NCBI RefSeq assembly: GCF_001194135.2
Contig: NC_068983.1
Coordinates: 159,898,777 to 159,962,776, forward strand
Reading direction: 5' to 3'
From: Octopus bimaculoides
Taxonomy: Eukaryota
DNA: 64,000 nt
The position numbers and the translations under genes were made by a program. The notes beneath the pieces were generated by a model, which did no database searches, had not been told where the DNA came from, and saw only the letters and a program-made list of their open reading frames with translations. Positions 1 through 60,069 of this stretch are shown here, in pieces. The number at the start of each line of letters is the position of its first letter. Positions within the stretch are counted from its first letter, which is position 1.

Positions 1-37
<37 letters not shown>

Positions 38-299
38 TACGTAGATCTATGTATGCGTACGCGCGTGTTTGTGTTTGTGCGTACCTGTGATTGTATACGA
101 GCGTTAGGAGGCGATATTTAGGAAGAGATAAGGGCTTCGTTGATTTTGGTGTGTACACATCCTTTTACGATGCCAAATATGAGTGTAGTCTATGTATAAC
201 GTCTCACGATACATCGATACATAATGTACTGCTTTCTTTCTTTCTTTCTTTCTTTTTTCTGGTTAATATAGTTTATATTGTGGAGAGATTAAGGGAACC

Positions 300-1090
300 A
301 TGAAGAATGAATACTGGTATTGCAGTGTGACGATTTGTCTTAGAAAATCATTGTGACATGATGCGTGTTGTGTCGTTGCTGTTGCTTTTTGGTGATGCTG
401 CCACTAATTATTGTGAAGTAGTGTTTTATTGTTGGTTTTATTGCTTAGGCTGGGTACAAAGGTTTTCTAGTCTTTGTGTTTCCTTCAGTGTATTTCCTTG
501 TTTAGTTTGGTGCCGAGTTATACTTGGTTGTTTGTAATTTTGGTGTGTTGTGTTTGAAGTTGTATTTAATTTCTATGAACTTCTCTATTTCTGGTGTATA
601 ATTGGGGCTTTATTTTTATGGCTCTTTGTGCGTTATGATTTTTTGGATGTGTCTATAATTATTTAGTAAGTATACGTGTTGCAGTGATTATATTAGTGAC
701 TATTGGTGTTGTTGTGCTTTTTGAAGTTCATAGAACTGTTGTAGGCTTCTTCATTGATGTGCTAATATGTTGTCCTAATAATTGATAGGTGATCAAGCAA
801 AGTTGGAGAATCTTTTGTCAAGTTAGGTTAGTGGAGAAGAAGGAGATGTCTGGGGAAAGTGCTAGAGTAGTTGTCTTCTTTAGGAATATCTCTTGTGTTG
901 CTGCTGGATTGTTTAGAATCTAAAAGTAATATATTTGCGGTGATATTGTTAGTTATATTACATGTTTTGATAACCACACTATATAAAAAGCAGGACCTCT
1001 GTGTGCATTGATGTTTCTTGCAAATATAGTATTTGTAAAGTGGTATAGTTGGAGTGTATAATCAGAAGAGACAGCTAGTGATGAAGCTAA
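300..1090 (-). mobile_element. Decayed non-LTR retrotransposon fragment (AP-endonuclease region)
   Basis: Minus-strand translation gives NTIFARNINAH (GDxNAH-like) and ALSPDISF (SPDIS-like) motifs with stops; C/A-rich sense strand. Confidence 0.5.
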
Positions 1091-1109
1091 GTGACATTAT
1101 ATATATATT

Positions 1110-1481
1110 TTTTCTTTTATTCTTTTACTTGATTCAGTCATTTGACTACGGCCATGTTGGAGCACCGCCTTTAGTCGAGCAAATCGACCCCAGGACTTAT
1201 TCTTTGAAAGCTTAGTACTTATTACTTATTCTTTCGGTCTCTTTTGCCGAACCGCTAAGTTGCGGGGACGTAAACATACCAGCATCGGTTGTCAAGCGAT
1301 GTTGGTGGGACAAACACAGACACACAAACATATACACACACATACATACATATGTATATATATATATATATATATACACATATATACGGCGGGCTCCTTG
1401 CCCAAGGTGTCACGCAGTGGGACTGAACACAGAAGCCTGTGGTTGGTAGGCAAGCTACTTACCACAGCCACTCCTGCACCT
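1110..1481 (-). mobile_element. tRNA-derived SINE, family A (internal deletion)
   Basis: Reverse complement has an A/B-box-like head (GGAGTGGCTGTGGTAAG...GTTCAGTCCCAC), a central CA/TA microsatellite and a GCAGTCAAATGACTGAA...TAAAAGA-type tail; five related copies in the window. Confidence 0.85.
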
Positions 1482-1511
1482 ATAATATATATATATATAT
1501 ANNNNNNNNNN

Positions 1512-1848
1512 ATTCTTTGTAAGCCTAGTACTTATTCTATCGGTCCCTTTTGCTGAACCGCTAAGTTACAGGGACGTAAACACACCACCAACGGTTGTCA
1601 AGCGATGTTGGGGGGACAAACACAAACACACAAACATACACACAGACACACAAACACGCACATATATATATATATATACATATATACGACAGGCTTCTTT
1701 CAGTTTCCTTCTACCAAATCCACTCACAAGGCTTTGGTTGGCCCGAGGCTATAGTAGAAGACACTTGCCCAAGATTCCACGCAGTGGGAATGAACCCGGA
1801 ACCATGTGGTTGGTAAGCAAGCTACTTACCACACAGCCACTCCAGCGA
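1512..1848 (-). mobile_element. tRNA-derived SINE, family A (3' end lost in gap)
   Basis: Same head and body as the copies at 13533-13905 and 19664-20114. Confidence 0.9.
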
Positions 1849-1850
1849 CT

Positions 1851-2129
1851 AACTAAAATTTTGATAAAAGTTTTATCAAAATGTATTATTTGTATTTTTC
1901 TAATGTCTTATGATTAATATATTTAATATTTCATTTTCTAAATCTTTCAAAATAGCCTTAATGTGTGTAAATCCCTCTTTTGGAATTCCTTGGGACATTG
2001 AAGTTTGTCCCCTTTAAAGTCAAGGGCGTACTTCTCCACCAGTACGTGCAATTTGATCTTTCTTAAATTTACCTGAATTTTTTCCACGTGACGAGAACCT
2101 TCTGTATATTTTAAATCATTCTCTTGTAT
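1851..2129 (-). pseudogene. rplO: Bacterial 50S ribosomal protein L15 pseudogene (5' part, internal deletion)
   Basis: NDLKYTEGSR / RGKNSGKFKKDQIARTGGEVRP*L*RGQTSMSQGIPKEGFTHI / INHKTLEKYK / FIKIL matches the L15 pattern MKLxELKxxxGSR...GKGxKGQxARxGGGVRPGFEGGQxPLxxRLPKxGF; stops and frameshifts present. Confidence 0.8.
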
Positions 2130-2160
2130 TCTAATTCATTCTCTCATACTTTTACTATTC

Positions 2161-2768
2161 TTATAATTCTTCAGTTGCTTTACGACTTCATCTAGCAACT
2201 TGGTCCAACTGTACTTTATGATTTCAATCCTTCTTTTGTAGCCCTAATCATATTAATTGGTGTAATTGAGCCTAATGATGTTGCACAAACATTGGCTAAT
2301 CCAGCGTGTTCAGTTACAGCACGAGTATGTCCTTCAGTAATAACGCCAGGCCCTTTATAAATGGTATAATCTTTCCTAACCTGCTCCAAAACATCCCATT
2401 ATTTCATAAGCAGCTGGTGTTCCAACAAGTGGTGCTCTAACTAATGAAATTTTTAGCCCTTTTGTTTGGTGTTTTAATAACATCAGGTACATCAGTAGCT
2501 TCTGTACTTACCAATCCAGCACGTCCATTTTTCTATCACAAATTATTAAAATTGTGGCAAATCTGAAATGACATCCGTATTTTGTCACTCTTGTTAGGCG
2601 ATTGTTACAATTGTTTCAGAAATCTCATTACCAGCTTGATTGCAATTAAATGAAATTTGTTCAGTTAATGATGTTTTAGGTCCATCTTGATTATTATTGT
2701 TCTCTTTTTTTTTCTTTTGCTTGCTCTTGAACAGTCGATATTAAATATACAATTTTCTTTTCTGTCAC
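2161..2768 (-). pseudogene. rpsE: Bacterial 30S ribosomal protein S5 pseudogene with N-terminal extension
   Basis: ETIVTI / VTKYGCHFRFATILIICDRK / NGRAGLVSTEATDVPDVIK / [22 protein letters not shown] / [46 protein letters not shown] / DQVAR*SRKATEEL* aligns colinearly with Firmicute S5 (e.g. [14 protein letters not shown]); several frameshifts; TAA at 2161-2163. Confidence 0.93.
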
Positions 2769-2787
2769 ATGTTTCGTTTCTTTCTGA

Positions 2788-3120
2788 TTATAATTTTAGA
2801 CCAGCTTCACGAGCTGATTCAACAAATGGCTACTTTTACATGATATAACTAACCACTGCGATCAAATACAATATTATGAATTTCGATTAGGTAGGTAGAG
2901 CATTTTCAGCAATATCTGCGTCAGTGCTTATTTAACAGCAGTAATAACTGAAGTTGAGTTTAAATAATTCATTTTAAAAATTGACGAAGAAACAATTGTT
3001 ACTTGTTTTATGTGAATAACAATGAACACTTAATTTGAAAACATTTAATCTTGGGAGTAGTAAAGTACCTGTAATTTTATTTTAAAGACGGTAGCATCTT
3101 TTGTTTTACAGTGAATAGAA
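2788..3120 (-). pseudogene. rplR: Bacterial 50S ribosomal protein L18 pseudogene
   Basis: KRCYRL*NKITGTLLLPRLNVFK / VTIVSSS / HNIVFDRSG*LYH / FVESAREAGLKL* matches L18 motifs GTxxRPRLNVF(K/R)S and VVFDRGGYLYHG...AREAGLKF; stop at 2788-2790, about 20 bp upstream of the rpsE start. Confidence 0.9.
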
Positions 3121-3362
3121 AACAAAGACAATAATTCAAGAAATACATATGGCTTAAGATATACAGAATTGGAGAACAAAATATCAGTTATAATGTGTGG
3201 GAATTATAAGTTTCAAAAGAAAATGATTTTTATAAATATTGCAGTTTTATTTTTTAAAGATAAGTAATTAATTTATATTTAATTTGTTAAGCTTTTATAG
3301 AAAACAACACACGTGTTCCTGACTTATTTGCATCTCCCTCTGTCTCTCTTTCTTACATATAT

Positions 3363-3568
3363 TGATTTCTAAATTTGGCGCAGGGCCAGCAATTTTGAGT
3401 GAAGTGTAAATCGATTACATCGACCCCAGTGTTCAACTGGTACTTAGTTTATCGCCTCGCAAGGATGTAAGGAAAAGTCGACCTCGGCGGAATTTGAACT
3501 CAGAACATAAAGTGAGATGAAATACCGCTAAGCATTTGACCCAGCGTGCTAACGATTCTGCCGTCTCA
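3363..3568 (-). mobile_element. tRNA-derived SINE, family B
   Basis: Reverse complement: GGCAGAATCGTTAGCACG...GTTCTGAGTTCAAATTCCGCCGAGGTCGAC...CTGGGGTCGATGTAATCGA; more than ten related copies in the window. Confidence 0.88.
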
Positions 3569-4249
3569 CAGTCTCATATATATATATATATATANNNNNN
3601 NNNNNNNNNNNNNNNNNNNNNNNNNNNNNNNNNNNNNNNNNNNNNNNNNNNNNNNNNNNNNNNNNNNNNNNNNNNNNNNNNNNNNNNNNNNNNNNNNNNN
3701 NNNNNNNNNNNNNNNNNNNNNNNNNNNNNNNNNNNNNNNNNNNNNNNNNNNNNNNNNNNNNNNNNNNNNNNNNNNNNNNNNNNNNNNNNNNNNNNNNNNN
3801 NNNNNNNNNNNNNNNNNNNNNNNNNNNNNNNNNNNNNNNNNNNNNNNNNNNNNNNNNNNNNNNNNNNNNNNNNNNNNNNNNNNNNNNNNNNNNNNNNNNN
3901 NNNNNNNNNNNNNNNNNNNNNNNNNNNNNNNNNNNNNNNNNNNNNNNNNNNNNNNNNNNNNNNNNNNNNNNNNNNNNNNNNNNNNNNNNNNNNNNNNNNN
4001 NNNNNNNNNNNNNNNNNNNNNNNNNNNNNNNNNNNNNNNNNNNNNTATATATATATATATATGAGAATTTAATTTCTATATAGAAGAGTATGACGTTCCC
4101 ACTTATGAATTTGAAGTTAAAATGAAATCTACTTTACTTTGTCTGAGTTAATAAATTCATTGTTACAGTAAAGAACAATTGTCTTTGCGATAGTATCATA
4201 TCGTTAATATCCTTAATTTTGATAAGTAATATCACAAGTTCTGTTAGAT

Positions 4250-4860
4250 GCCAATATTTTACAGTTATTTCAATCATTTGTAGTATTGACTGCTGTGCTA
4301 CGAAAGTTTACATTCTGTCTGGAGTGTAGAATGGCATCGGAACATGTATTTTCAGCACTGTCCTGTATATTTCTTTATATCTCATATAAGCCAGGGGTGA
4401 CAATAGCAATCAGAATCTAACACTGGTTGTTCTTCCCTCTTTATAATTGGTGGAGTGTAGTCTATTCCGGTATTTAGTGGTACTGATGCTACTAATATTG
4501 CAGCTGTAATCTTTCTGTGTTTGCTTCTGTTTTCATATTTATATGACTTAAATGGGAGATGTGATCACAGTCTTTATGGTGATGTTATAGTAGTGTTTCG
4601 AGCTGGTGTAGATGTATTTGGGGGATTTGCTGGGCGGAATATTTTCAAGTAGTGTTAGGAGGGTGATGCTTGACGTGTGTTGCGGCAACAAATAGTACTT
4701 ATCGAATGGTGGGCGAATTTTAGTGAAGAGTTACTATGGTAATATTATTATGAGGAAGTAATCTGGTAAAAACTTGAGTTTGGTCGAAATCTGTTCAGCT
4801 AGTGTCTAATTAAGAAAATTATGTGAAGCATTTTGTATTTACAGAGAGATGTTGGTAGTT
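4250..4860 (-). mobile_element. Heavily decayed LINE-like 3' fragment
   Basis: C/A-rich minus strand resembling the 300-1090 fragment, with a weak Cys/His cluster; no clean motif. Confidence 0.3.
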
Positions 4861-5988
4861 AATAATAGTGGGAACTATGCTAAATAAGTAGATGAGTACT
4901 TAAATTATAATCAAATAAGCAATACTTTTAGAGCAGAAGCTGTAGAAAAATAAAGGAAGAGGGACTAATTTGTAATAATGTTAGCGACTCTCACTTTTGA
5001 ATAATGTTAGCGACTCTCCAGTTTAAAAGCTGGGTTTCTACTGGCACACAAGAAGCTTGTCTGTCTTTGTCTGCTGAGACTTATGAATGTATGCATGCAT
5101 GTATGTGCGTGTATATGTGTCTGGAGGAGATATACTTTCGACTTTTCTCATATGTATGTAGGATTCTAAAACGGAGTGTTTCTTCTTCAAGTGTATGGTA
5201 TGAATTGCATTTGATCAGAGAATTTCGATAAATGATTTACTGATTCGCTCCATCATTATATCATTATATGTAGACGAATGATTCCTTCTTCAACAACAGC
5301 ATAATTCCTTCTTCAAAGGGAATTTTTATTAGCATACTTCTAAGAACTTATCATTAAAACATCCTTAATGTATAACAAAAGGATAATTGACGTCACTATT
5401 ATTCAGTCGATCTAACGAGGGAAGCTCTACATCGTCGCCCCGCCAATAACTAAATTTCTCCCTAAACCACCTCCAACTTCTTAAATAGGGTGGGTTATAT
5501 TCGATACTGTCGTTTCTAGATACTTATAAAAGAATGAGATGGTTACGGCGGGATAACTTTAGATCATAAGTCACATCGCTCAGACTCAGTGAGGCCAAAG
5601 AAACTCAGCAACAACAACTGCGACTTTTATTACGCCTGTTGTACTCGCAACTAGAAAAACTGAATTTGAGCGAAATATAGTCTTCATGTTGCTTTTACTA
5701 ATCTGTAATATCGGGTTTTCAATATTCACATGCATACGTATTCATGCTGCGCTATTATCTACCTATATCCTTGATGCTATATTATAGAATATTGTGAAAT
5801 TTATTGCTGAGCAACTTTTCAGTGTGTGCTGCTGTATCAAGTGGGAATAATGTCTTTATAAGACATCAAGTTTTCTTAGACTACTGGCTATATGCAATGT
5901 GCATCAGTGTATGCATGTTTGCATGCGCGTCTGTAGGAGCGTAACTCGTAGTTAATTGCATGACTAAGGATTCTTAGAAAGTAGTTAC

Positions 5989-6028
5989 CTTTGTTGATCA
6001 TGCTATTCTCTAAGAGGAGGAAGTTTCT
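5989..6028 (-). other. Candidate 40-nt exon (splice signals only)
   Basis: Acceptor CTTATTTTATTTCAG and donor AAG|GTAACT; phase-0 reading RNFLLLENSMINK. Confidence 0.35.
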
Positions 6029-6676
6029 CTGAAATAAAATAAGCACACTATGATTATGCGCCTTGTAAATCATTCATGTTGTACTTAATTATCTTCATTA
6101 ATGGTCAAAAATTCCCATCCTGGAATTTTGCACTTTTAAGAACTAAGGATAAAATAGAATGAATCGTATAGTTCTTATGAGATACATTCCCTTAGAAGAA
6201 GGTTATGCAATTTGTTTTCTTTTTATTAGGTAAATTTGGCATTACGGCATTAGAGATAATAGCACTAGTTTCATTTCATCATATATATTTAAATGGATGG
6301 CATAATTCTGATGAAATCAGAGTAAAAATATATGGTAGAATTTAGTGAGTCAGAGATATGAGGCTGCAGAATATTAACCACGTTGTGTAAAGGACATTTC
6401 TAGCTATTCATAGAAATCCTTGTTCATTACATTACAATTGTAGAGATATAAAACATTAAGAAATGGTAAATGTATGCACAGGGAGTGTATACAAGTGCGT
6501 GTGCTGTGTTTATATGTGTGTACTTGTGGATAAAAATAAAATTAGATATTAGACAATCAAGTTAAACTTTTGCACGTTTAACGTTTTCTTCACGGTATTT
6601 TAAGGTTAAACAGCAATTTTGAAGTACAGTAAATAAGGTAATTACTAAAATACGGTTGGTGGTTGGTAAAACTTAC

Positions 6677-6721
6677 CTGCATTAAGTGCACTAGTGTCAA
6701 CAAATTTGCCAGCCTACAAGC
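6677..6721 (-). other. Candidate 45-nt exon (splice signals only)
   Basis: Acceptor GTTTTCTTCAG and consensus donor CAG|GTAAGT; only phase 0 is open (ACRLANLLTLVHLMQ). Confidence 0.4.
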
Positions 6722-8089
6722 CTGAAGAAAACATTTCAAACTTAACTTCTTTGAAAAAAATCATACAAAGTACAAGGTGACCGTTGGGTATAAATCAACG
6801 AAAATAGAACATTTTCCTGTTGCCTTAGGCCAAAATTTGGTTGAATAGAATCCAATTTCCATTGTAATAAGAACGTTAGATAAAAGTATAATCAATTTGA
6901 AATCTTGCTTTTCTGTTGAGGTAAGGAAAAACAACATAGAACGGAAATAAAAGTGTACCATTAATACTGATAACGGCGTTAGTACGACATAGTGGCGATG
7001 ACAGCGAAAATGCAGTTAGGAGTGTTGCTGCTTATTGAGTCAGTTTGCATGGTGATGTTTATGGCTATCGTCATAGTTTAAAAAGCTGCATAGTTTGAAG
7101 GATGGAGGTTTCTATTAAAAATAGAGAGCTTTCACTACCAAATTTCCTCGCTTTTGATTTGATTACATCGATTTTCCAAATCCCATTCAGATTTTTTCCT
7201 TATTAATTAAAATTATCAAGAACTACTAAGAATATTTTTCGATGAATCTACTTTCCACAAAATTCTTTATGACCTCAATCATCTAATCTATTTTCGATTT
7301 TTTTTTCAGCAGGACAGAAATCAATCAGAACAGGCAAAGAAACTGAAAACTAACAAATGCTGTAAATCTTTCAGAAAATGGATGCATATCGCATTACTGC
7401 CATTGAAGATTCTACAGAAATTTAAAAAGAAAACAAATAGAGGAAATATTTCATTTGTTCTTTTCTCTGGAGTCAGATAAAAGCAATAGAAGACGCATTC
7501 ATCTAAACGAACAATTTTCATCTTTTGCCGAGTAATTTTAGCCCAAGAGATTAGAAGAAAAATTCCCAGTTCTGAAAAATTAAACAAGTTATCCAATATT
7601 GAAACAAGCACAGACGTAATAACAGCCATTCATAACAATAAAGCCAAGTTATTTAGAAGGTAATTTAATTTCTATCTATCCTCATTTCATAAGTCTCCTA
7701 GATGTTATGTTAACTGCAGTAAGTTGCTAGACTGGAATTTTTGTGGTAATTTCATCGATGATGTTCAGTTGATAGATTTAATCTTTTTAATATAGTTGAT
7801 CTGTTGCCTTGGTATTGCTGATAATGTAGCATAATTAATGTTAGTGTATATGTATATAAGATGTTATACATTTTGAATGTTGACACTGATGTTGTTATTA
7901 TAATATTATCAATGTTAGTAGATGTATAACACATGATATACGTTGTCAATGACGTTCTTGATAATAAAACAGCCCCGTTAATGTTAGTTCTCGAATATCT
8001 GATGAAATTTGCTCTTGCTACTTTATAAGTTCATTGCCTGTATTACTTCCATATGTTCATGCTGCGGTTGCTATTGCTAATGTTGTTTT

Positions 8090-13532: not shown

Positions 13533-13905
13533 CTTATTCTTTTACTTATTTCAGACATTTGACTGCGGCCATGCTGGAGCACCGCGTTCAGTCGAACAAA
13601 TGAACCCCAGGACTTACTCTTATTCCACTTGTCACTTTTGCCGAACCGCTAGGTTACAAGGACGTAAACACACCAACATCAGTTGTCAAGTGATGGAGGG
13701 GGACACACACAGACACACACACAAATATATACATATATACGAAAGGCTTCTTTCAGTTTCTGTCTACTAAATCCACTCACAATGCGTTGGTGAGCCCGAG
13801 GCTATAGTAGAAGACACTTGCCCAAGGGGGCACGCAGTGGGACTGAACCCAGAACCATGTCTTTGGGAAACAAGCTTCTTACCACACAGCCACGCCTGCA
13901 CCTAT
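13533..13905 (-). mobile_element. tRNA-derived SINE, family A
   Basis: Near full-length match to the other family A copies. Confidence 0.9.
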
Positions 13906-14366: not shown

Positions 14367-15179
14367 TTTTTATTCTATCTGTACCCTCAAAATAATGCCA
14401 GACATGTAAAAAATAAAAAATAAAAAGGAAACAAAGAAGGAAATTGAGAAGGAAAGGAAAGGCAAAGTAAATACACCTATGTGTATTAAATTATCGATTG
14501 TTCTCATTCACTAAGTTTCAGTTGATGCACAAGAATACCATTTTCTTGTTTTCGCAAAAGATGGATGTAAGATCAAATGATAGCAGACAGCCGGCCAGGC
14601 GATTGGATAAAATAAAATAAAAGGCTGTTCACCATATTGTCTCACTAAAACGCTAAGAAAAAAGACAGTAGAGAATAATGAAATGAAAGTGTTGTATAAA
14701 AGGAAATATGTACGAGACGAAAGATGTGTGGACAGGTTAAGCCGTGAAAGTGAGGTCGATGTTAGAAGTTCAACAACGGAATCTTAGTATTCTAAAATGA
14801 ATATTGATTAATGTGTATGCGAAACATTTTTTTTGCGTTCTAAAGAGACTCTAGAATTGTCTTTTTAAAATATAATCAATCTGATTCATATGAAGCACTT
14901 AAATATTTTTTGGGAAAAATTATTGTTTGCTTTAGAAAAATTTTAACGAAAATATATAAGAGGTATTTCGAGTTGACAATAAAGTAAAAAAAAAAGATAT
15001 GTTTTTCTCAAGTAAGTTGATTTTCATCAAATCAATCTTTATTTGAAGCTACGACAATAGTGTCTACAGACGTTGTTCACACACACATGCACGCACGCAC
15101 ACACAAACATCCAGATATATATATATATATATGTCCAAGATGGGTCTCACACGCACACAAACACGTATACACGCACACA

Positions 15180-15221
<42 letters not shown>

Positions 15222-15222
15222 T

Positions 15223-15299
<77 letters not shown>

Positions 15300-15302
<3 letters not shown>

Positions 15303-15690
15303 AAGATGCGTCTCAAACGTAATTTGTGACGCATCTTAGATATCAAATGGACCGACCACATCACCAGCACCGAAGTCCTCAACCGGGCCAAGATACCCAG
15401 CATACACATCTTGCTCCAGCAGCGTCGTTTGCGCTGGCTCGGCCATGTTCATCGCATGGCATACGGATGGATCTCAAGAGACCTCCTGTATGGAAAATTG
15501 GCCACCAGCACAAGAGCACGAGAACGAACTCTTCTTCGTTTCAAGGACGTCTGTAAGAGGGATATGAAGTCGCTTGATTTGGACATCCTGAGATAGGATG
15601 AGGTTACAAATGATTGTCCACACTAGAGACAAATATTGCGAAAGGGAATGAAGAGAGCTGAAGAAATCAGTAGTGCCGGTAGAGAGTTCC
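15300..15690 (+). mobile_element. RTE-clade LINE 3' fragment
   Basis: RILDIKWTDHITSTEVLNRAKIPSIHILLQQRRLRWLGHVHRM...DLLYGKL...RFKDVCKRDMK. Confidence 0.88.
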
Positions 15691-15840: not shown

Positions 15841-16222
15841 AGGCGTGGATGTGTAGTAAGTAGATTGCTTACCAACCACATAGTTCCGGGTTCAGTCCTA
15901 CTACGTGGGACCTTCTAGTATAGCGTTGGGCCGACAAAAGTTTTTTGAGTGGATTTGGTAGACGGAAACTGAAAGAAGCCCGTCGTATATATATATATAT
16001 ATATNNNNNNNNNNTTTGTTGTTTGCATCTGTGTTTGTCTCCCCCATCGCTTGACAACCGATGTTGGTGTGTTTACATCACCGAAACTTAGCAGTTCGAC
16101 AAAAAGAGACCGATAGAATAAGTACTAGGCATACAAAGAATAAGTCACGGAGTCGATTTATTCGACTAAAGATGGTGTTCCAGCATGGCCGCAGTCAAAT
16201 GACTGAAACGAATAAAAGAATA
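15841..16222 (+). mobile_element. tRNA-derived SINE, family A
   Basis: Head GGCGTGGATGTGTAGTAAG...GGGTTCAGTCC; tail CAGTCAAATGACTGAAACGAATAAAAGAATA; spans a 10-N gap. Confidence 0.88.
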
Positions 16223-17876: not shown

Positions 17877-18789
17877 GTGCGATAGCTTGTCTAACTCACT
17901 TTCTGGAAGAAATCTACCATCGTCAGATATGGAGAGGCATGGGCATTTTCTAGAGTAAAAATGTTCATGATTACCCTCTGCCATCAGTCTTTACGTAGCA
18001 CTCCAGCCTGTAATGTCGAAATGCTACCAACAAATCACAGTGAGAGTCATGACTGTGGTTTCTAGAAATCCCCACTATCAAGAAAAACAACCCGCCAATT
18101 ACTTCTCGCCACACAACACAGACGTAACAGCCAATAACATCAAATGATGATTAATACAAAACATATGCTCCTTCATGAGACAAATATAATTCCGATTACT
18201 TGCTTTGTTTCATCTGGAGACTTCGAAATCAAAGTAGCAATTTACTTGACATCACATAGAGCATGCTTAACAAGACCATACCTTATGAAGCTTAGAGTTT
18301 GTGATTTCTGACTCTGCTTTGTGAGAGACTGGCCATACTACAACAATCTGGGATATGAGTGAAAAAAGAAACAATCTGTCGTATTGTTATCACAAGAAAT
18401 AAGTTCTGTTAGAGGACTTCAAGACATCGACCAATTTCAACCCAGAAATACCACTCCAGGCTAACTTGTCCATGCTCAGTTGCTGCGTATCTAATCCGAG
18501 CATTTAGGAAAATGATTATTGCTCACTATCACCACCCACCCAGAATCCACTCTTGCCCTACAATTTGATTTTAGCCTGACACTGCCTCTGTACGCGTTAA
18601 CTGTCGTTACTGAAATGTCACAATGTAGAGAAAGCGGAAATACGCGCGTTAACATCCATTTTACACTCTATTATAGACAGCAAAGCATGTAATGAAAGAA
18701 CTGATGTTATAAGATAGCTAAAACACAAATATGACCTGAAGCGACCTTTTGAGCCCTAAATATTCTCACCTGGAAGGCAGTCAACATTT

Positions 18790-19660
18790 GTTTCAAATTT
18801 TCCCCACTCGAAATCCGTATACTTGATGATCTGGGCATGCGCAGTGGTCACGAAGCTTCAAGCGATGCAGAACTGAGTTTACATGTTCTATACACATATG
18901 CACAATATCTGGAAACCACATATTGGATGTTACATAATCGTAAAGATTGTCTGACAACTATTCTTGGTTGACTAGGGCTTTGTCAGAAGGGGTTGAGTCT
19001 TTCAACGCATAATTCCTCAATCCAGGGCTTGATAACAGTTTCCAGTACCTCAATGTATCCAGCAACATTAATTCTAAGAACCCGTGGAAAAAAGTTGGGT
19101 GGGCGCATCGCATCCCCTTCCTTATTCACCACTCTTAAAACCATCACAGTTGCTGGAAATTGTGTGTGCATCACTCTGGATACTTCAGAAGGATCTGCAC
19201 ATAACTACCTGTCATTTCTTCTGTTAGACATTTGATCAAGGTCAAAGTTTTTTTCGTCAGAGAAAAGCCAAAGCATATCTTGTTCACGATGTACACCCAA
19301 AGTTCTTTAGCAATGGACCTCATTGATCATCTGGGGTTTTCATTGACAAAGTTTTGAACATGGATAAATTCCGGTGGCCTTTTACAGTCTGAACGATGTG
19401 AATGTTTTTTTCCCTTTTGATACAGTGAAGCATTCCTATCGAATAATTTCAATTCCAATCGAACTTTATGTACAAATGATCTTACAACATTTAGAAAGTT
19501 GCTAATTTCTAAATAACTGTGGTTTGCATGTATAACAACTAGGATTGCAGGTCTTTTTATATCTTGAAAGGGTTATCTGAAAAAAAAAGGATACATTAAA
19601 TAATTTAAAGGTGTAATGAACTAAAAACGAAGTGTCCTCAAACACCCCTCGCATCCTGTA
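18790..19660 (-). mobile_element. Tc1/mariner (maT/DD37D-like) transposon, internally deleted
   Basis: End reads TA-CAGGATGCGAGGGG on the minus strand; MLWLFSDEKNFDLDQ...FPATVMVLRVVNKEGDAM...YIEVLETVIKPWI; region after the second Asp missing; other TIR not found. Confidence 0.8.
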
Positions 19661-19663
19661 GAT

Positions 19664-19803
19664 ATAGTGTGGTAAGTAGCTTGCTTACCAACCACATGGT
19701 CCCGGGTTCAGTCCCACTGCGTGGCACCTTGGGCAAATGTCCTCTACTATAGGCTTATGTGTGGATTTGGTAGACGGAAACTGGAAGAAGCCCGTCGTAT
19801 ATG

Positions 19804-19899
<96 letters not shown>

Positions 19900-20114
19900 G
19901 TTGTGTGTCTGTTTGTCCCCCTAGCATCGCTTGACAACTGATGCTGGTGTGTTTACGTCACCGTAACTTAGCGGTTCGGCAAAAGAGTTCGATAGAATAA
20001 GTACTAGGCTTACAAAGAATAAGCTCTGGGGTCGATTTGCTCAACTATAAAGTCGGTGCTCCAGCATGGCCGCAGTCAAATGACTGAAACAAGTAAAAGA
20101 GTAAATGAGTAAAA
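19664..20114 (+). mobile_element. tRNA-derived SINE, family A, with expanded internal (TG)n
   Basis: Clear head, body and TAAAAGAG tail. Confidence 0.92.
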
Positions 20115-53573: not shown

Positions 53574-54844
53574 TACAGGTCACAATGTGTAAATTGTCAC
53601 CATTTTATATTTTTTAACTTTGCGCATGCACATTGTTTGCTTTCAATTTTGTCGACTACACAGTGTTGTAGGGTCAGTTGGGCACCGTCTGTGAGGAAAG
53701 CAGCTCCATGACGCAATTCACTCGGCCAGAAATTCGGAAATGACATGCTGTACTGCTTGGCATTGAAGCCTGAAGCTCCAATAGCATCATTTCAGAGTGT
53801 TTGGGTACCAATCTGAGGACAGTGCAGAGGATTCGGAAAGAGTTGGATGAGTCTAGTGGTGATTACGAAAGTACAGCAGCTCGGAAAACTCACTCTGATC
53901 ATCCTGATAAGAAAAGAACACCTGAATCTGTTGGTGAGATCCCTCCAAGTCAATCAGGTCCATCACCAGCGACATGGGAGTGTTTGAGTTTCTTATCAGG
54001 CAGGAAGTGAATGAAGACATTCAGTCTTCGTCATATAAGATGAAAAACGGATAATTTTTATCCCAAGCCATCAAAGACAAGAGGTAAGACTGGACTACAA
54101 AGGTTTTGAAAAAATTCAAGCATCCCCTCCAACCGATCATGCATTGGTTTTTCTCAGACGAGAGACGTTTCTGCTAGGATCAAATGGTGAACACACAGAA
54201 ACCGTGAACTAGCCATGTCCCCAAAACATGTAACTAAAGTGATAAAAATCAAGCATTCAGTCAACATCATTGTATTTGAAGTGATCGCTAGTGATGTCTC
54301 CATTCTTCTTCCCACATGGCCCCAGACTCAACACGGAGGTCTTCATAAAGTGCCTGGTGGAAGCAGTGCTGCCTTGAGTCAAGAGGATTGCTGTTGAAAG
54401 ACCCTATGTCTGGCAACAGGACTCTGCACAATGCAACACAAGCAGGAGAACCAATTGTGACTGTTAGACAATTTTTGTGACCAAATCACCCCTAGCATCT
54501 GGCCACCTAACTCCCCAGACTGCAACCCCCTTGATTATTCTGTGTGGGGCGCAGTTGAGTATGCGTCCAACAAAACTCATTGTAACACCATAGATGAACT
54601 GAGGGCAAGAATTATGGCAGCATTCACCAACTTAAACAAGGCGACAGCTCATAAGTTACAGGAGATTCCGAAGTCGTCTCGAGGCCGTGGTGGAAGCCAA
54701 TGGCGATTTTATTGAATAGATTTACTCTTCAGTATTTCAAGATATTTTAAAGTAATTTTGGTAAATATATCTGTTAAAACGAAATGTCAGTGTTATTTTC
54801 AGTTTTGTGTAATTTAGACGACAATATATTCACCGCGCCCTGTA
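53574..54844 (+). mobile_element. Near full-length DD37D (maT) Tc1/mariner transposon, inactivated
   Basis: TA-CAGG...CCTG-TA ends with degenerate TIRs; FSDE, WQQDSA and WPPNSPDCNPLDYSVWG; 110 nt between the 2nd and 3rd Asp codons equals 37 codons minus one base; ends RSRLEAVVEANGDFIE*. Confidence 0.92.
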
Positions 54845-55959: not shown

Positions 55960-56273
55960 CGCGTACGTGTGTATTAATCTCGTGTTGCACAAACGACTCA
56001 TAAGTCAAATATATACACGAAAACTAAGATTCATAAAAATATTGATATGAACTCATTTCTTTTGTAAAGACACAACATCTTTGTTCCTTTGGAAGGATCT
56101 AACATACCAGATCGATAGCGTGTTAGATGACATTCACCAGCAAGCAATCATGTAAGAATGACAAAACTGGAATTGTACCCATGCTTTATGCATCATAATG
56201 GTCTCCGGTTTGGAGAGCATGATTGGTGGAAACCGGAACTATCTCAGTACAGATATGCATCCGCATACGTGTG

Positions 56274-56304
<31 letters not shown>

Positions 56305-56334
56305 ATACATAATAAAACACACACACACATGCAT

Positions 56335-56545
56335 GTATTGCCTTCTATTCTCGGCACAAGGCCTGATATTGGGGAGGATCCTAGTAAATTTTATCAACCC
56401 CAGTGCATGACTGGTACTTATTTTATTGACCTAGAAAGAAAGACAAGCAAGATCAACCTAGGCAGTATTTGACCTCAAAATGTAAAGTCGGAAGAAATGC
56501 CGCTAATAATTTTTTCCGGTATGATAATAATTCTGCCAGCTGGCT
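56335..56545 (-). mobile_element. SINE family B, diverged
   Basis: ACTGGTACTTATTTTATTGACC...AAATGCCGCTAA...TTCTGCCAGC. Confidence 0.7.
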
Positions 56546-56659
56546 GTCTTATACACTCATATTATTTTCTACATGCTACAGATCACTAAGATCTTCTTAA
56601 AATAAAAACTAAAAATCATATAAGATAACGCATTATGTACACCTAACTTCATCTAAATA

Positions 56660-58800
56660 TCTCCTCCTCCTCCTGTCTCGTCCTTCCGTCTCTCCTCACT
56701 GCCTCTAACCTCATTGTCCGCACCCCTCGCATTTCCACAATTTACTTCCTCCCCAAAATCCACAAACCTAACAACGCTGGCTGCCCCATCGCCTCCGCCT
56801 GAAACTGCCCCACCGAACTCATCTCCAGATATCTTGAGCATGTTCTTGCCCCCCCCCCCTAGTGGCTTCCCTCCCTCTCACATCCATGACACCAACCATG
56901 CTCTTCGTTTGTTCAACTCTTTCTCTTTCCTCCTGGCCCCTCTAAACTTCTCTTCACTCTTGACATCAAGAGTCTATACACGGTGATCCCTCACGACGAA
57001 AGGCTGCGTTCACGCCAACATTTCCTTGACCTTCGACCAAACCCGCAACCTGACACATGCACACTCCTTCGTCTAGCCTAACTTATCCTCTCACTTAACA
57101 GCTTCTCGTTCGCAGGTGATTTTTACCAGCATTTCTCGGGAGTGACCATGGGAACGAGAATGGGCCCCAACAATGCGAACCTGTTCGTTGGATACGTTGA
57201 GGCCCAAATATTCTTAAGTTTCACTGGTCCCACTCCTTAACTATACGGTTGTTATATTGACGACCGTATCGGTGCGACATCACTCTCCCGCGAACATCTA
57301 GACTCTTTCTTCTCTTTTGTCAAATCTTTCCATCCTGCCCGCCAATTCCCCTGCACTATTTCCGACACTTTAGTCGCCTTTTTCGACATTTCTGTCAGCA
57401 TTCATCACTCCAATCTCACCACCTCTATTCACTACAAACACGCAGACTCACGCTCATTCCTCAACTTCTCCTCCTGCCACACTAAACACACCAAGCTCTC
57501 CATCCCCTATTTCCAATTCTTCCGTCTACGCAGGCTCTGCAGTGACAATCATGACTGAGACTCAATCTCAACACATGGCTCGCCACTTCATCCTACCACT
57601 ATCCACGCCGTCCTTACCAGAGCACGTTCTGTGGACCGTGCATCTGCTCTCTCTCTCTCCCCGCCCCACCCCGCCGTCACTCGTTTCTCGTCTCCCCTCA
57701 CCTACCACCCACTACCCTACCTCTCCAACCCCACCCTCCTCACAGGTACCCATCATCGACCCTATCATATCACTGACTCCTTCACCTGCACTTCTAGCAA
57801 CGTCATCTACTGCATCTCCTGCTCTCTCTGCCCTTCTCCATACACAAACGGGTTCGCGGAACACCTCCGAGACATCCGACTTGGCAACAACACATAGGTC
57901 TCGCGCTATTTCCGCTCTACCGGTCACTCTTTACAACACCTGTCTGTGTTCGGATTGTCCTTGCACAGAGGCCATCCGGACTCCCGTCTTCGCCGTGAGC
58001 AGGGATTAATCTTCTCATTTCGCTCCTTTGCGACACATGGGCTAAACTCACCTCCCTTCTTCATCTAATCCTTCTCCTCTCTTCCTGTTAGACCTACTTC
58101 CTCCCACCCACCTCTCCTCTCTTACTCTGGAACATACTCCTCTTCATTCCTACCCACCTTCTCACTTCTACCCTTTCCTTCATCGTCATCCCTTCCCTCG
58201 TTACCCCACCCCTACACATTGCAACCCCATCATCCCTATACATCCGTTCCCAGCCCACCCATTCCTTAGACCCCACGCTTGCTTCCCTCACTCTCGCCTC
58301 TCCCGCACCCCAACACCACCACACCACACCACACCACCCCGCACACACTGGTGTTGACCACTTCCCAGTACCCACATCAGCGCTCACATTAGCACTGACC
58401 ACTTCCCAGCACTTACACCATCATCCACACACCTACACGTGCACACGCCAATGTCACCAGCTCCCTCCCACACGCACGCACACGCACATACACGCTCCCA
58501 CATACACACGCACGTTTACCTTCATTTTAGGATCACCACTACTTTATTATCTCCCCTTCTTCCTAGCTCTTCTGTGTGACCTCTCTGTCAGGCATTCGCC
58601 ATGATAGATCGCTATCCACTATACCTTTTTCTATTTTCTCTCCCTGTTTATTTCTATGTTCCTTCCTGTCGAAAGAGCATAGGCTCGAAACATAGAAGAC
58701 TTTCACACTTTTCGAGCGTTAAACTAATACATCTGTTTGTGGTTTAAACACCCGCCTTCGTCTTTGTTTTTTTTGTTTTTGTTTTTTGGTAAATTCTCAC
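56660..58800 (+). mobile_element. Penelope-like retroelement (RT + GIY-YIG endonuclease), decayed, with pyrimidine/CA-rich 3' region
   Basis: IYFLPKIHKPNN, LFTLDIKSLYTVIPH, GVTMGTRMGPNNANLFVGYVE, YIDD, SIPYFQFFRLRRLCS, FTCTSSNVIYCISCSLC, FAEHLRDIR; terminal GAAAGAGCATAGGCTCGAAAC. Confidence 0.92.
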
Positions 58801-59448
58801 CATATGTATATAACTTTTATCAAGATATTGTCTTAGCAATCATCATTCTGTCACATAGACAGTTGATGTTCGTCTCCGTCTTGAATGAAAACCCGATTAT
58901 ATCACGTTAAAACCACGTGCGAGCACACAAGGTTTTGAAGTAAAGAAACTAATACACACAGCAAGAGAAATAACTCTTCAATTATTATCTGGCATTAAAT
59001 TTGAATTTTGAATCTCATACGCTGACTTAAATGACCATACATGCATTATGCAATTTTAGTGTTTGCAAGAAATATTTCGTATTTGCATATATCTGAACCT
59101 GATTGCAGAATTTTTACCTGTTTTCACATATTTTTGTCGTTAAACGTGGCACATAGTGTTGTGAATTCACAGGACTGTATGTTTATAAGTTTATATGTCT
59201 ATTTCCAACACAAACTGCAAACACATATTGAACCTTTTAAAAATCGGCAAACACGCTCATTAAAGGAGGTGAAAAAAAATATTTATGAGGCAAACAACCA
59301 CACACATAATAAACTACCAGTCGGCAATATAACCCGAACATGTGATAACGAATCCCAACATTTCTTCTCTAATTCAATTTTTTTCCGTTATGATATGTGG
59401 TCTATGCCTGATGAATACGTTTGAGATATGGAACTATTAGTAGCACTA

Positions 59449-59489
<41 letters not shown>

Positions 59490-59544
59490 NNNNNNNNNNN
59501 NNNNNNNNNNNNNNNNNNNNNNNNNNNNNNNNNNNNNNNNNNNN

Positions 59545-59578
<34 letters not shown>

Positions 59579-60069
59579 AAATAGGGAAGTATCCTTTGTT
59601 CTAACACAACATCCACATTAAGTTGGAAATAATTGACTTCTGACATTAATACTTCCTCAGTAGTAATTAATTATTTTTTAATGAGCCTGTTAGTTCTTTG
59701 CGACATCAGTTCCCGAAAAGACACTGAAATGCTATAAACCATTGATTGTGTTATTCGGCTGTTATATCGCTCCCGGATATCTGCTAACGATGTGTCTGAG
59801 TAGGGCGAAATCCTACGAACGGTGCATAAGAACTCTCATAAAAGTACACGCTGATCTGGCAGTTCCAGCGCTAGTAGTAGACGATTGTCATCTACCAACG
59901 ATGAAATAGGTGAGGTTCTATGCACCATGCATTCATATGAGAGGTTCTCTCAAGGTAAATAATGCAGTATTTGGTATTCAAAGATTACATCGATGTTAAG
60001 TTAGATATAAAGATTGCCTTTTGATTTAGACACACACTCACAAACACATACACACGCACNNNNNNNNNN

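Follow-up and report, generated by a model that had tools for sequence, protein, structure and literature searches.

A decayed rplR-rpsE-rplO fragment of probable Spiroplasma-like origin among the repeats of an animal genome

How three ribosomal protein genes in the order of a bacterial operon came to lie, in decayed form, between the interspersed repeats of an animal genome is the question raised by one segment of a 64-kb stretch of DNA from an apparent cephalopod. This whole stretch, referred to here as the window, is repeat-rich, has about 35% G+C, and contains many microsatellites and scaffold gaps. The segment under study occupies positions 1851-3110 of the minus strand (1.26 kb; all coordinates are window positions unless a contig is named) and consists of remnants of rplR, rpsE and rplO, which encode the ribosomal proteins L18, S5 and L15. 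It is very probably a non-functional fossil of these genes in an animal nuclear genome, derived from a Spiroplasma-like Mollicute donor nearest the Mirum clade. The remnants, and a short duplication at the junction of the last two, are located as follows.

2788..3110, minus strand: rplR (uL18) pseudogene, codons ~13-121 and a TAA stop (2790-2788), without the first ~12 codons.
2155..2770, minus strand: rpsE (uS5) pseudogene, full length, from an ATG at 2770-2768 to an end at 2155.
2107..2144, no strand assigned: tandem duplication of 20 bp in 1.9 copies (Tandem Repeats Finder), at the S5/L15 junction.
1851..2142, minus strand: rplO (uL15) pseudogene, codons 1 to ~113 of 145, ending where a host short interspersed nuclear element (SINE) starts.

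The preliminary description, made from the letters of the window, had read three minus-strand pseudo-open reading frames (ORFs) as L18, S5 and L15, and had proposed colinear matches to these proteins as the check. When the minus strand is translated from 3110 to 1851, pieces of the ribosomal proteins are found scattered over all three frames. A tblastn search of the whole window with the proteins of two Spiroplasma operons (genetic code 4) matched residues 15-107 of L18 at 3102..2831 across three frames (E 2e-8), residues 57-187 of S5 at 2600..2207 (E 1e-20) and residues 4-88 of L15 at 2120..1921 (E 1e-8). The best high-scoring pairs reached 35, 55 and 41 bits, respectively, against a maximum of 18-20 bits in 100 dinucleotide-preserving shuffles of 1851-3120. 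Pfam applied to stop-masked frames gave Ribosomal_S5_C above its gathering score (E=4.7e-10), and L18 matches that are weak but colinear, in two frames. Both the assignment of the three pseudogenes and their colinearity are confirmed by these results.

Finer placement comes from alignment of the DNA with Spiroplasma operons, which puts codon ~13 of rplR at ~3110 and extends through rplO up to 1850. The rplR remnant also aligns with the L18 of a living Spiroplasma-type operon (L009) at a Smith-Waterman z of 26, and the rpsE remnant keeps a feature typical of Spiroplasma S5, a Lys/Asn-rich extension at the N-terminus. All three remnants are colinear on one strand and in operon order, with spacers of about 17 nt (L18/S5) and 12 nt (S5/L15). 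The 20-bp duplication is a slippage event that followed the insertion, and it accounts for a 13-nt 'insertion' at the start of L15. In the operon order of the preliminary description rpmD was placed, in brackets, between rpsE and rplO. This gene is absent, as no match to an L30 query was obtained in the window and the ~12 nt between S5 and L15 leave no room for it; an apparent L30 remnant following the S5 core proved, on alignment with Spiroplasma operons, to be the C-terminal tail of S5. No other gene of the S10/spc/alpha region was matched by tblastn anywhere in the window, and BLAST found no second copy of the segment there, so that it is single-copy within the window.

None of the three genes is intact or translatable, and the segment is truncated at both ends. 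Relative to the Spiroplasma reference it carries about 18 frameshifting indels, including deletions of 14, 14, 37 and 31 nt, and at least nine TAA or TAG stops in the reference frame. The rplR remnant has four such stops and five frameshifting indels, the rpsE remnant has five stops and about eight frameshifting indels, and the rplO remnant has one TAA stop and the deletions of 37 and 31 nt. Three-taxon branch lengths for codon positions 1, 2 and 3 are 0.240, 0.245 and 0.237 on the branch of the window copy, as against 0.14, 0.08 and 0.45 on that of living Spiroplasma. The even distribution is the pattern given by neutral drift, and together with the frameshifts and stops it bears out the neutral decay that had been proposed from the letters. 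If neutral rates typical of animals apply, about 0.24 substitutions per site probably represents, as a rough estimate, tens of millions of years.

Two further readings were tried and set aside. The use of TGA as a tryptophan codon is unsupported, both TGA codons of the reference frame being aligned with codons for other amino acids. The ratio of observed to expected CpG (CpG o/e) is 0.62 in the segment, 0.74 in the window and 0.28-0.87 in the Spiroplasma references, and does not discriminate.

The immediate surroundings of the fossil consist of the following features.

1502-1511: scaffold gap of 10 N.
1512..1850, minus strand: SINE-like interspersed repeat, whose 5' head adjoins the truncated L15 remnant.
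3111..3345, no strand assigned: AT-rich single-copy spacer of about 230 bp between the fossil and the next repeat, with no copy elsewhere in the window.
3346..3594, no strand assigned: second interspersed repeat; BLAST matches it 13 further times in the window, at about 10 places from 8 to 62 kb.
3595-4045: scaffold gap of 451 N.

The sequence from 1512 to 3594 contains no N, and host repeat families that recur through the window lie on both sides of the fossil. Both families resemble repeats that are abundant in Octopus genomes, and it is from this resemblance that the host appears to be a cephalopod. Copies of the SINE-like repeat are found at 1199-1477, 13619-13899, 15842-16141 and 19667-20020 and are 74-86% identical. 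Read by eye, the repeat appears to have a tRNA-like head; ARAGORN called no tRNA. The spacer gave nothing beyond shuffles when compared with Spiroplasma L6 plus its spacer (z=1.2 and -0.7), and no Pfam match in six frames. Six-frame Pfam searches of the near flanks (1-1100, 3100-3594 and 4046-7000) returned no domain. There is no trace of L6 upstream of the fossil (3116-3345), and none of SecY or of the C-terminal part of L15 on the far side of the SINEs (240-1100). This last region is an 860-bp single-copy G+T-rich stretch to the left of two SINEs, with no repeat copies, Pfam matches or operon homology.

A live contaminant is excluded by the gap-free course of 1512-3594 between two repeats that both recur in the window, and the suggestion that bacterial DNA had been inserted into an animal genome is in this respect upheld within the assembly. 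The segment might still be an assembly artefact, in which contaminant bacterial or other-eukaryote reads were joined to host repeats. The scaffold is interrupted by gaps 340 bp to its left and 485 bp to its right, the flanks are repeats, where assemblers err, and other animal records, those of Zophobas morio and Ixodes persulcatus among them, contain Spiroplasma S5 filed as 'animal' proteins, from which it follows that Spiroplasma contamination of animal assemblies does occur. However, the observed load of frameshifts and stops in three essential genes is impossible for a living bacterium. The junctions at 1851 and 3110-3345 do not fall at low-complexity sequence, the flanking repeats belong to the window's own families, and the fossil has no k-mers in common with the repeats and no match elsewhere in the window. 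A chimeric join would need sequence common to both sides at the junctions, and the lack of any argues against a chimera. An artefact of this kind is accordingly considered very improbable. Some observations do weigh against insertion into the host chromosome: the junctions are known from one short-read-style scaffold with gaps nearby (1502-1511 and 3595-4045), and no second fossil of the window type was found in the metagenome or viral collections scanned, a metagenome scan with the C-terminal peptide of the window S5 included.

The donor is indicated most clearly by S5. The frameshift-corrected S5 of the window matched only two database proteins, of which the closer (P0001) is an intact relative with 72% identity to Spiroplasma S5. 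The core of the window S5 is itself 52-53% identical to Spiroplasma S5 and about 40% identical to Bacillaceae S5. In neighbour-joining (NJ) trees, the only kind constructed, it falls on the Spiroplasma side, apart from the Bacillaceae outgroups, in 200/200 bootstraps. Placement within the genus is weak, with 74/200 bootstraps for a position with the Citri-Chrysopicola-Mirum group. Over 1182 aligned columns of DNA, the p-distance of the window copy is 0.335 to operon L012, 0.349 to that of S. syrphidicola, 0.363 to an S. melliferum-type operon, 0.393 to that of S. taiwanense and 0.49 to the outgroup. L012 is from GCA_040940205.1, and S. mirum and S. eriocheiris (the Mirum clade) fall in the same S5 cluster, which includes sequences from ticks and a crab pathogen. 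The L15 of L012 contains the motifs 'RRIPK' and 'TNIN', common to the fossil lineage, and the window rplO shares 'IPK'.

Gene order points to the same donor. All five of the Spiroplasma-type operons compared (L009, L010, L012, L013 and L014) have the order L18-S5-L15-SecY without L30, whereas rpmD is present in the non-Spiroplasma comparator locus L003. Living Spiroplasma spc operons thus resemble the window copy in gene order (SecY being present in the living operons only), in the absence of rpmD and in the Lys/Asn-rich extension of S5, and their spacers are 12-30 nt. They differ in that their genes are intact and under purifying selection, with a ratio of nonsynonymous to synonymous substitution rates (dN/dS) of 0.22-0.28, whereas the window copy is broken throughout, truncated at both ends, and 33.5% diverged in DNA from the Mirum-clade operon L012. 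The bacterial donor of the preliminary description, with its hint of a Mollicute, can accordingly be narrowed to a relative of Spiroplasma. Two Spiroplasma-type S5 sequences are filed as animal proteins, P0043 ('hypothetical protein Zmor_008688 [Zophobas morio]') and P0147 ('unnamed protein product [Ixodes persulcatus]'); the choice for each lies between symbiont contamination of an animal assembly and a further transfer. A scan of genome contigs with patterns built from the aberrant residues of P0001 returned only a Devosiaceae locus.

The same comparisons bear on an organellar source, either as nuclear mitochondrial DNA (NUMT) or plastid DNA, or as a decayed cluster of host mitoribosomal genes. 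The segment is AT-rich and non-coding, as are many NUMTs. Nevertheless, the window copy falls with Spiroplasma, apart from the non-Spiroplasma outgroups, both by S5 and by the DNA alignment of the three genes, and the spacing of 12-20 nt, the lack of introns and the Spiroplasma-type absence of rpmD are all at odds with such an origin. To our knowledge, animal mitochondrial DNA encodes no ribosomal proteins. Nuclear mitoribosomal genes are dispersed and contain introns. Among the S5 and operon sequences compared, the S5-L15 pair is nested in those of Spiroplasma and so is not organellar, and an organelle-derived segment retains next to no probability. The preliminary description had likewise dismissed a mitochondrial or mitoribosomal origin, which agrees with the finding that the nearest relatives are Spiroplasma chromosomes.

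If the segment is a Spiroplasma-like fossil, its DNA would have come from a bacterium in or beside germline cells and may have been captured at a chromosome break, by comparison with Wolbachia insertions. The captured fragment would never have made protein in the host and would have drifted neutrally since capture, accumulating about 0.24 substitutions per site. A SINE now adjoins the end of L15 and appears to cut it, in whichever order the two insertions occurred. The fossil would have no present-day role.

In arthropods and nematodes, insertions of Wolbachia DNA into the host nuclear genome are established (Dunning Hotopp 2007; Nikoh 2008; reviewed in PMC5091035), with an example in Glossina (PMC3998919). 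Their lengths run from a few hundred bp up to whole genomes, and the majority of their genes degrade and are unexpressed (PMC5091035; PMC3998919). The segment is a fossil of endosymbiont-to-animal transfer of the same kind, in that chromosomal DNA of an endosymbiont lies in an animal genome with the gene order of the donor kept. It differs from the Wolbachia cases in having a Spiroplasma-like Mollicute donor and an apparent mollusc (cephalopod) host, in that only 1.26 kb was detected in the window, by tblastn with operon genes over all 64 kb and Pfam on the near flanks, and in its great age (about 0.24 substitutions per site). NUMTs are captured at chromosome breaks, decay neutrally and are fragmented by transposable elements (PMC5570036). 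Their fate is the same as that of the segment, and presumably so is the route of entry; the source here is a bacterium and not the organelle of the host, so there is no continuing supply from a resident genome.

Endosymbiont fossils in animal chromosomes record past close associations between bacteria and the germline. The well-documented examples known to us are almost all of Wolbachia in arthropods and nematodes, and a search of the literature found no report of transfer from Spiroplasma to a cephalopod. A Spiroplasma fossil in an apparent cephalopod would therefore widen the range of both donors and hosts, and would mean that germline cells of the host lineage were once within reach of a Spiroplasma-like Mollicute. 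Because ORF-based annotation does not see it, the segment is also useful for testing screens of animal assemblies that tolerate frameshifts.

In all of the trees, the sequence nearest to the window copy is a second decayed-looking locus, from termite metagenomes. P0001 and its cluster mates come from ENA ERZ27257296, ENA ERZ27257302, JGI 3300002508, Ga0099364 and Logan SRR5248856. The locus is represented by five short contigs (L001, L005, L006, L007 and L011) that are 98.8-99.9% identical to each other, and is called the L005 type here after the longest (5.9 kb, 1-5911; k141_500117 of ENA ERZ27257296). The source of L006, IMG 3300002508, is the P1 gut metagenome of Termes hospes (Table S1 of PMC7024585), and on this ground the L005 type is most likely a fossil, of Spiroplasma origin, in the genome of a termite. 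In the coordinates of contig L005 it contains the following.

1923-2444: S5 ORF, intact, 173 aa.
~2470-2690: L15 N-terminus, frameshifted.
~200-1470, minus strand: decayed tyrS, opposite in strand to S5 (Pfam tRNA-synt_1b, E 8.7e-44).

As read by eye, tyrS is separated from S5 by an apparent SINE-like repeat; there are also two exon-like open frames, each ending at GT. The CpG o/e of the host flank is 0.22, compared with 0.74 in the window. The termite locus is like the window copy in having S5 with the N-terminus of L15, eukaryote-like surroundings and no codon-position bias. It is unlike the window copy in that S5 is an open frame of 173 aa, L18 is absent, L15 ends at aa ~80, tyrS and a different SINE lie alongside, and the branch is shorter (about 0.1).

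The window copy and the L005 type are about 70% identical in DNA over 730 nt and form a clade in 197/200 protein and 300/300 DNA bootstraps. Between them dN/dS is 0.91 (dS 0.34), compared with the 0.22-0.28 of living Spiroplasma pairs. The L005 branch, with 0.16, 0.09 and 0.07 at the three codon positions, has no excess at third positions, and neither does that of the window copy. The two copies share 25 exclusive nucleotide states, spread 9/7/9 over the codon positions; the next best pair shares 14, spread 4/0/10. In S5, six amino-acid states common to the two copies are absent from all of about 50 Spiroplasma sequences, among them the replacements R46C and H103Y at residues otherwise invariant in that set. 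The shared states of S5 also include H108C and Y142C, and the derived sequences GCFGAG, VPY and ADVC. When metagenomes were scanned for the Cys variant of the S5 motif, the termite locus was the only match, and two scans of viral contigs with DNA motifs specific to the two copies gave no match. The neutral-looking pattern suggests either that both descend from one ancestral copy that was already dead, or that a single donor strain was the source of both captures, which would then be close in time.

In the first case, a dead copy would have reached the second lineage by descent, if the hosts are related, or by transfer between hosts on a transposon or virus. This is compatible with the origin proposed above for the segment, and competes with the notion of one private insertion per host. 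The joint clade, the dN/dS near unity, the lack of a third-position excess on both terminal branches, the even spread of the shared states and the shared replacements at invariant residues all favour it, as do the Termes hospes source and the eukaryote-like character of the termite locus (the SINE-like repeat, the GT-ending frames and the low CpG o/e of the flank). On the other hand, the two copies have no indels or stops in common, and the S5 frame is intact in the termite copy but shattered in the window. Their ends also differ, with L18 missing, L15 ending earlier and a tyrS fossil alongside in the termite. The flanks share only (GT)n and no interspersed repeats, no common carrier element is visible, and the diagnostic sequences are on none of the viral contigs scanned. 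By estimate, parallel change would account for about 6 of the 25 shared states. A rough chi-square test against a selected stem reaches only about p=0.02, and in NJ trees long AT-rich branches such as these two can be drawn together. A single dead ancestor is thus possible, and is put forward tentatively.

In the second case, the two would be independent insertions, close in time, whose donors belonged to a single species-level Spiroplasma lineage, and each would have decayed neutrally in its own host. The differing ends and neighbours and the lack of shared disabling mutations are as expected of two insertions. Some of the shared states (RRIPK and TNIN in L15) are present in a living Mirum-clade operon, which means that part of the shared signal is history of the donor lineage, and the presence of tick and crab-pathogen sequences in the Mirum-clade S5 cluster also fits. 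Furthermore, the termite copy was found by a search built for the nearest relative, which introduces an ascertainment effect. However, branch lengths bound the divergence of the donors at no more than about 0.07 at synonymous sites, which requires germline capture to have happened twice, in different phyla, over a short span of time. The even 9/7/9 spread is unaccounted for by two insertions, as are the shared changes at invariant S5 residues, barring parallel CpG or transition hits. In addition, 'VCxKSLGSNTPINM' occurs in no living bacterium of the JGI metagenome collection, where the sole match is the termite locus. Independent capture from one donor lineage is quite possible on this evidence, while short of being the expected outcome.

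A more specific form of the single-ancestor history is that a dead piece of Spiroplasma DNA moved between animal genomes of different phyla, for example as cargo of a transposon or virus, and was not captured twice. This seems rather unlikely. If it were true, it would amount to horizontal transfer of a bacterial pseudogene, and would provide a datable marker linking very distant hosts. More generally, the link between the window copy and the termite locus, if it holds, bears on the movement of foreign DNA between animal genomes.

The remainder of the window contains other repeats and low-complexity sequence. Rfam at gathering thresholds found nothing in the window, exact look-ups of two of its ORFs returned no record, and part of the SINE sequence was not found in the literature. 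Transposon-like features, recognized by eye, are as follows.

53672-54814, plus strand: stop-poor long frame with a mariner/Tc1-like motif, 'WPPNSPDCNPLDYSVWG'.
18693-19307, plus strand: stop-poor long frame of the same type.
46723-47370, 43322-43525 and 14988-15593, all plus strand: pieces of decayed non-LTR (long terminal repeat) retrotransposons.

The mariner/Tc1-like frames have no Pfam match at E<=1e-3, and are probably decayed copies of a DDE transposase, as judged from the motif. The non-LTR pieces comprise one reverse-transcriptase-like ORF and two conserved C-terminal tails of long interspersed nuclear elements, 'LEIEITRMWNLKT..IPIIVGALG' and 'ILDIKWTDHITSTEVL'. The reverse-transcriptase-like ORF (46813-47373) had no match in the protein database or Pfam, and a Pfam search with three transposon-like ORFs also gave no match. 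Two trinucleotide arrays are present. The first, a long array within 32700-33400, reads as poly-Ser/poly-Glu in translation (about 32.9-33.2 kb), and the second, at 42440-42680, reads as poly-Ile/Asn (about 42.6 kb) and runs into a gap of 647 N. The region from 56000 to 60000 is the most G+C-rich part of the window, with a G+C fraction of 0.47 at 56-58 kb and 0.39 at 58-60 kb. Its GC skew is strongly negative (-0.39 and -0.28), and it contains long plus-strand open frames rich in Pro, Ser and Thr (e.g. 57374-58006 and 58046-58744).

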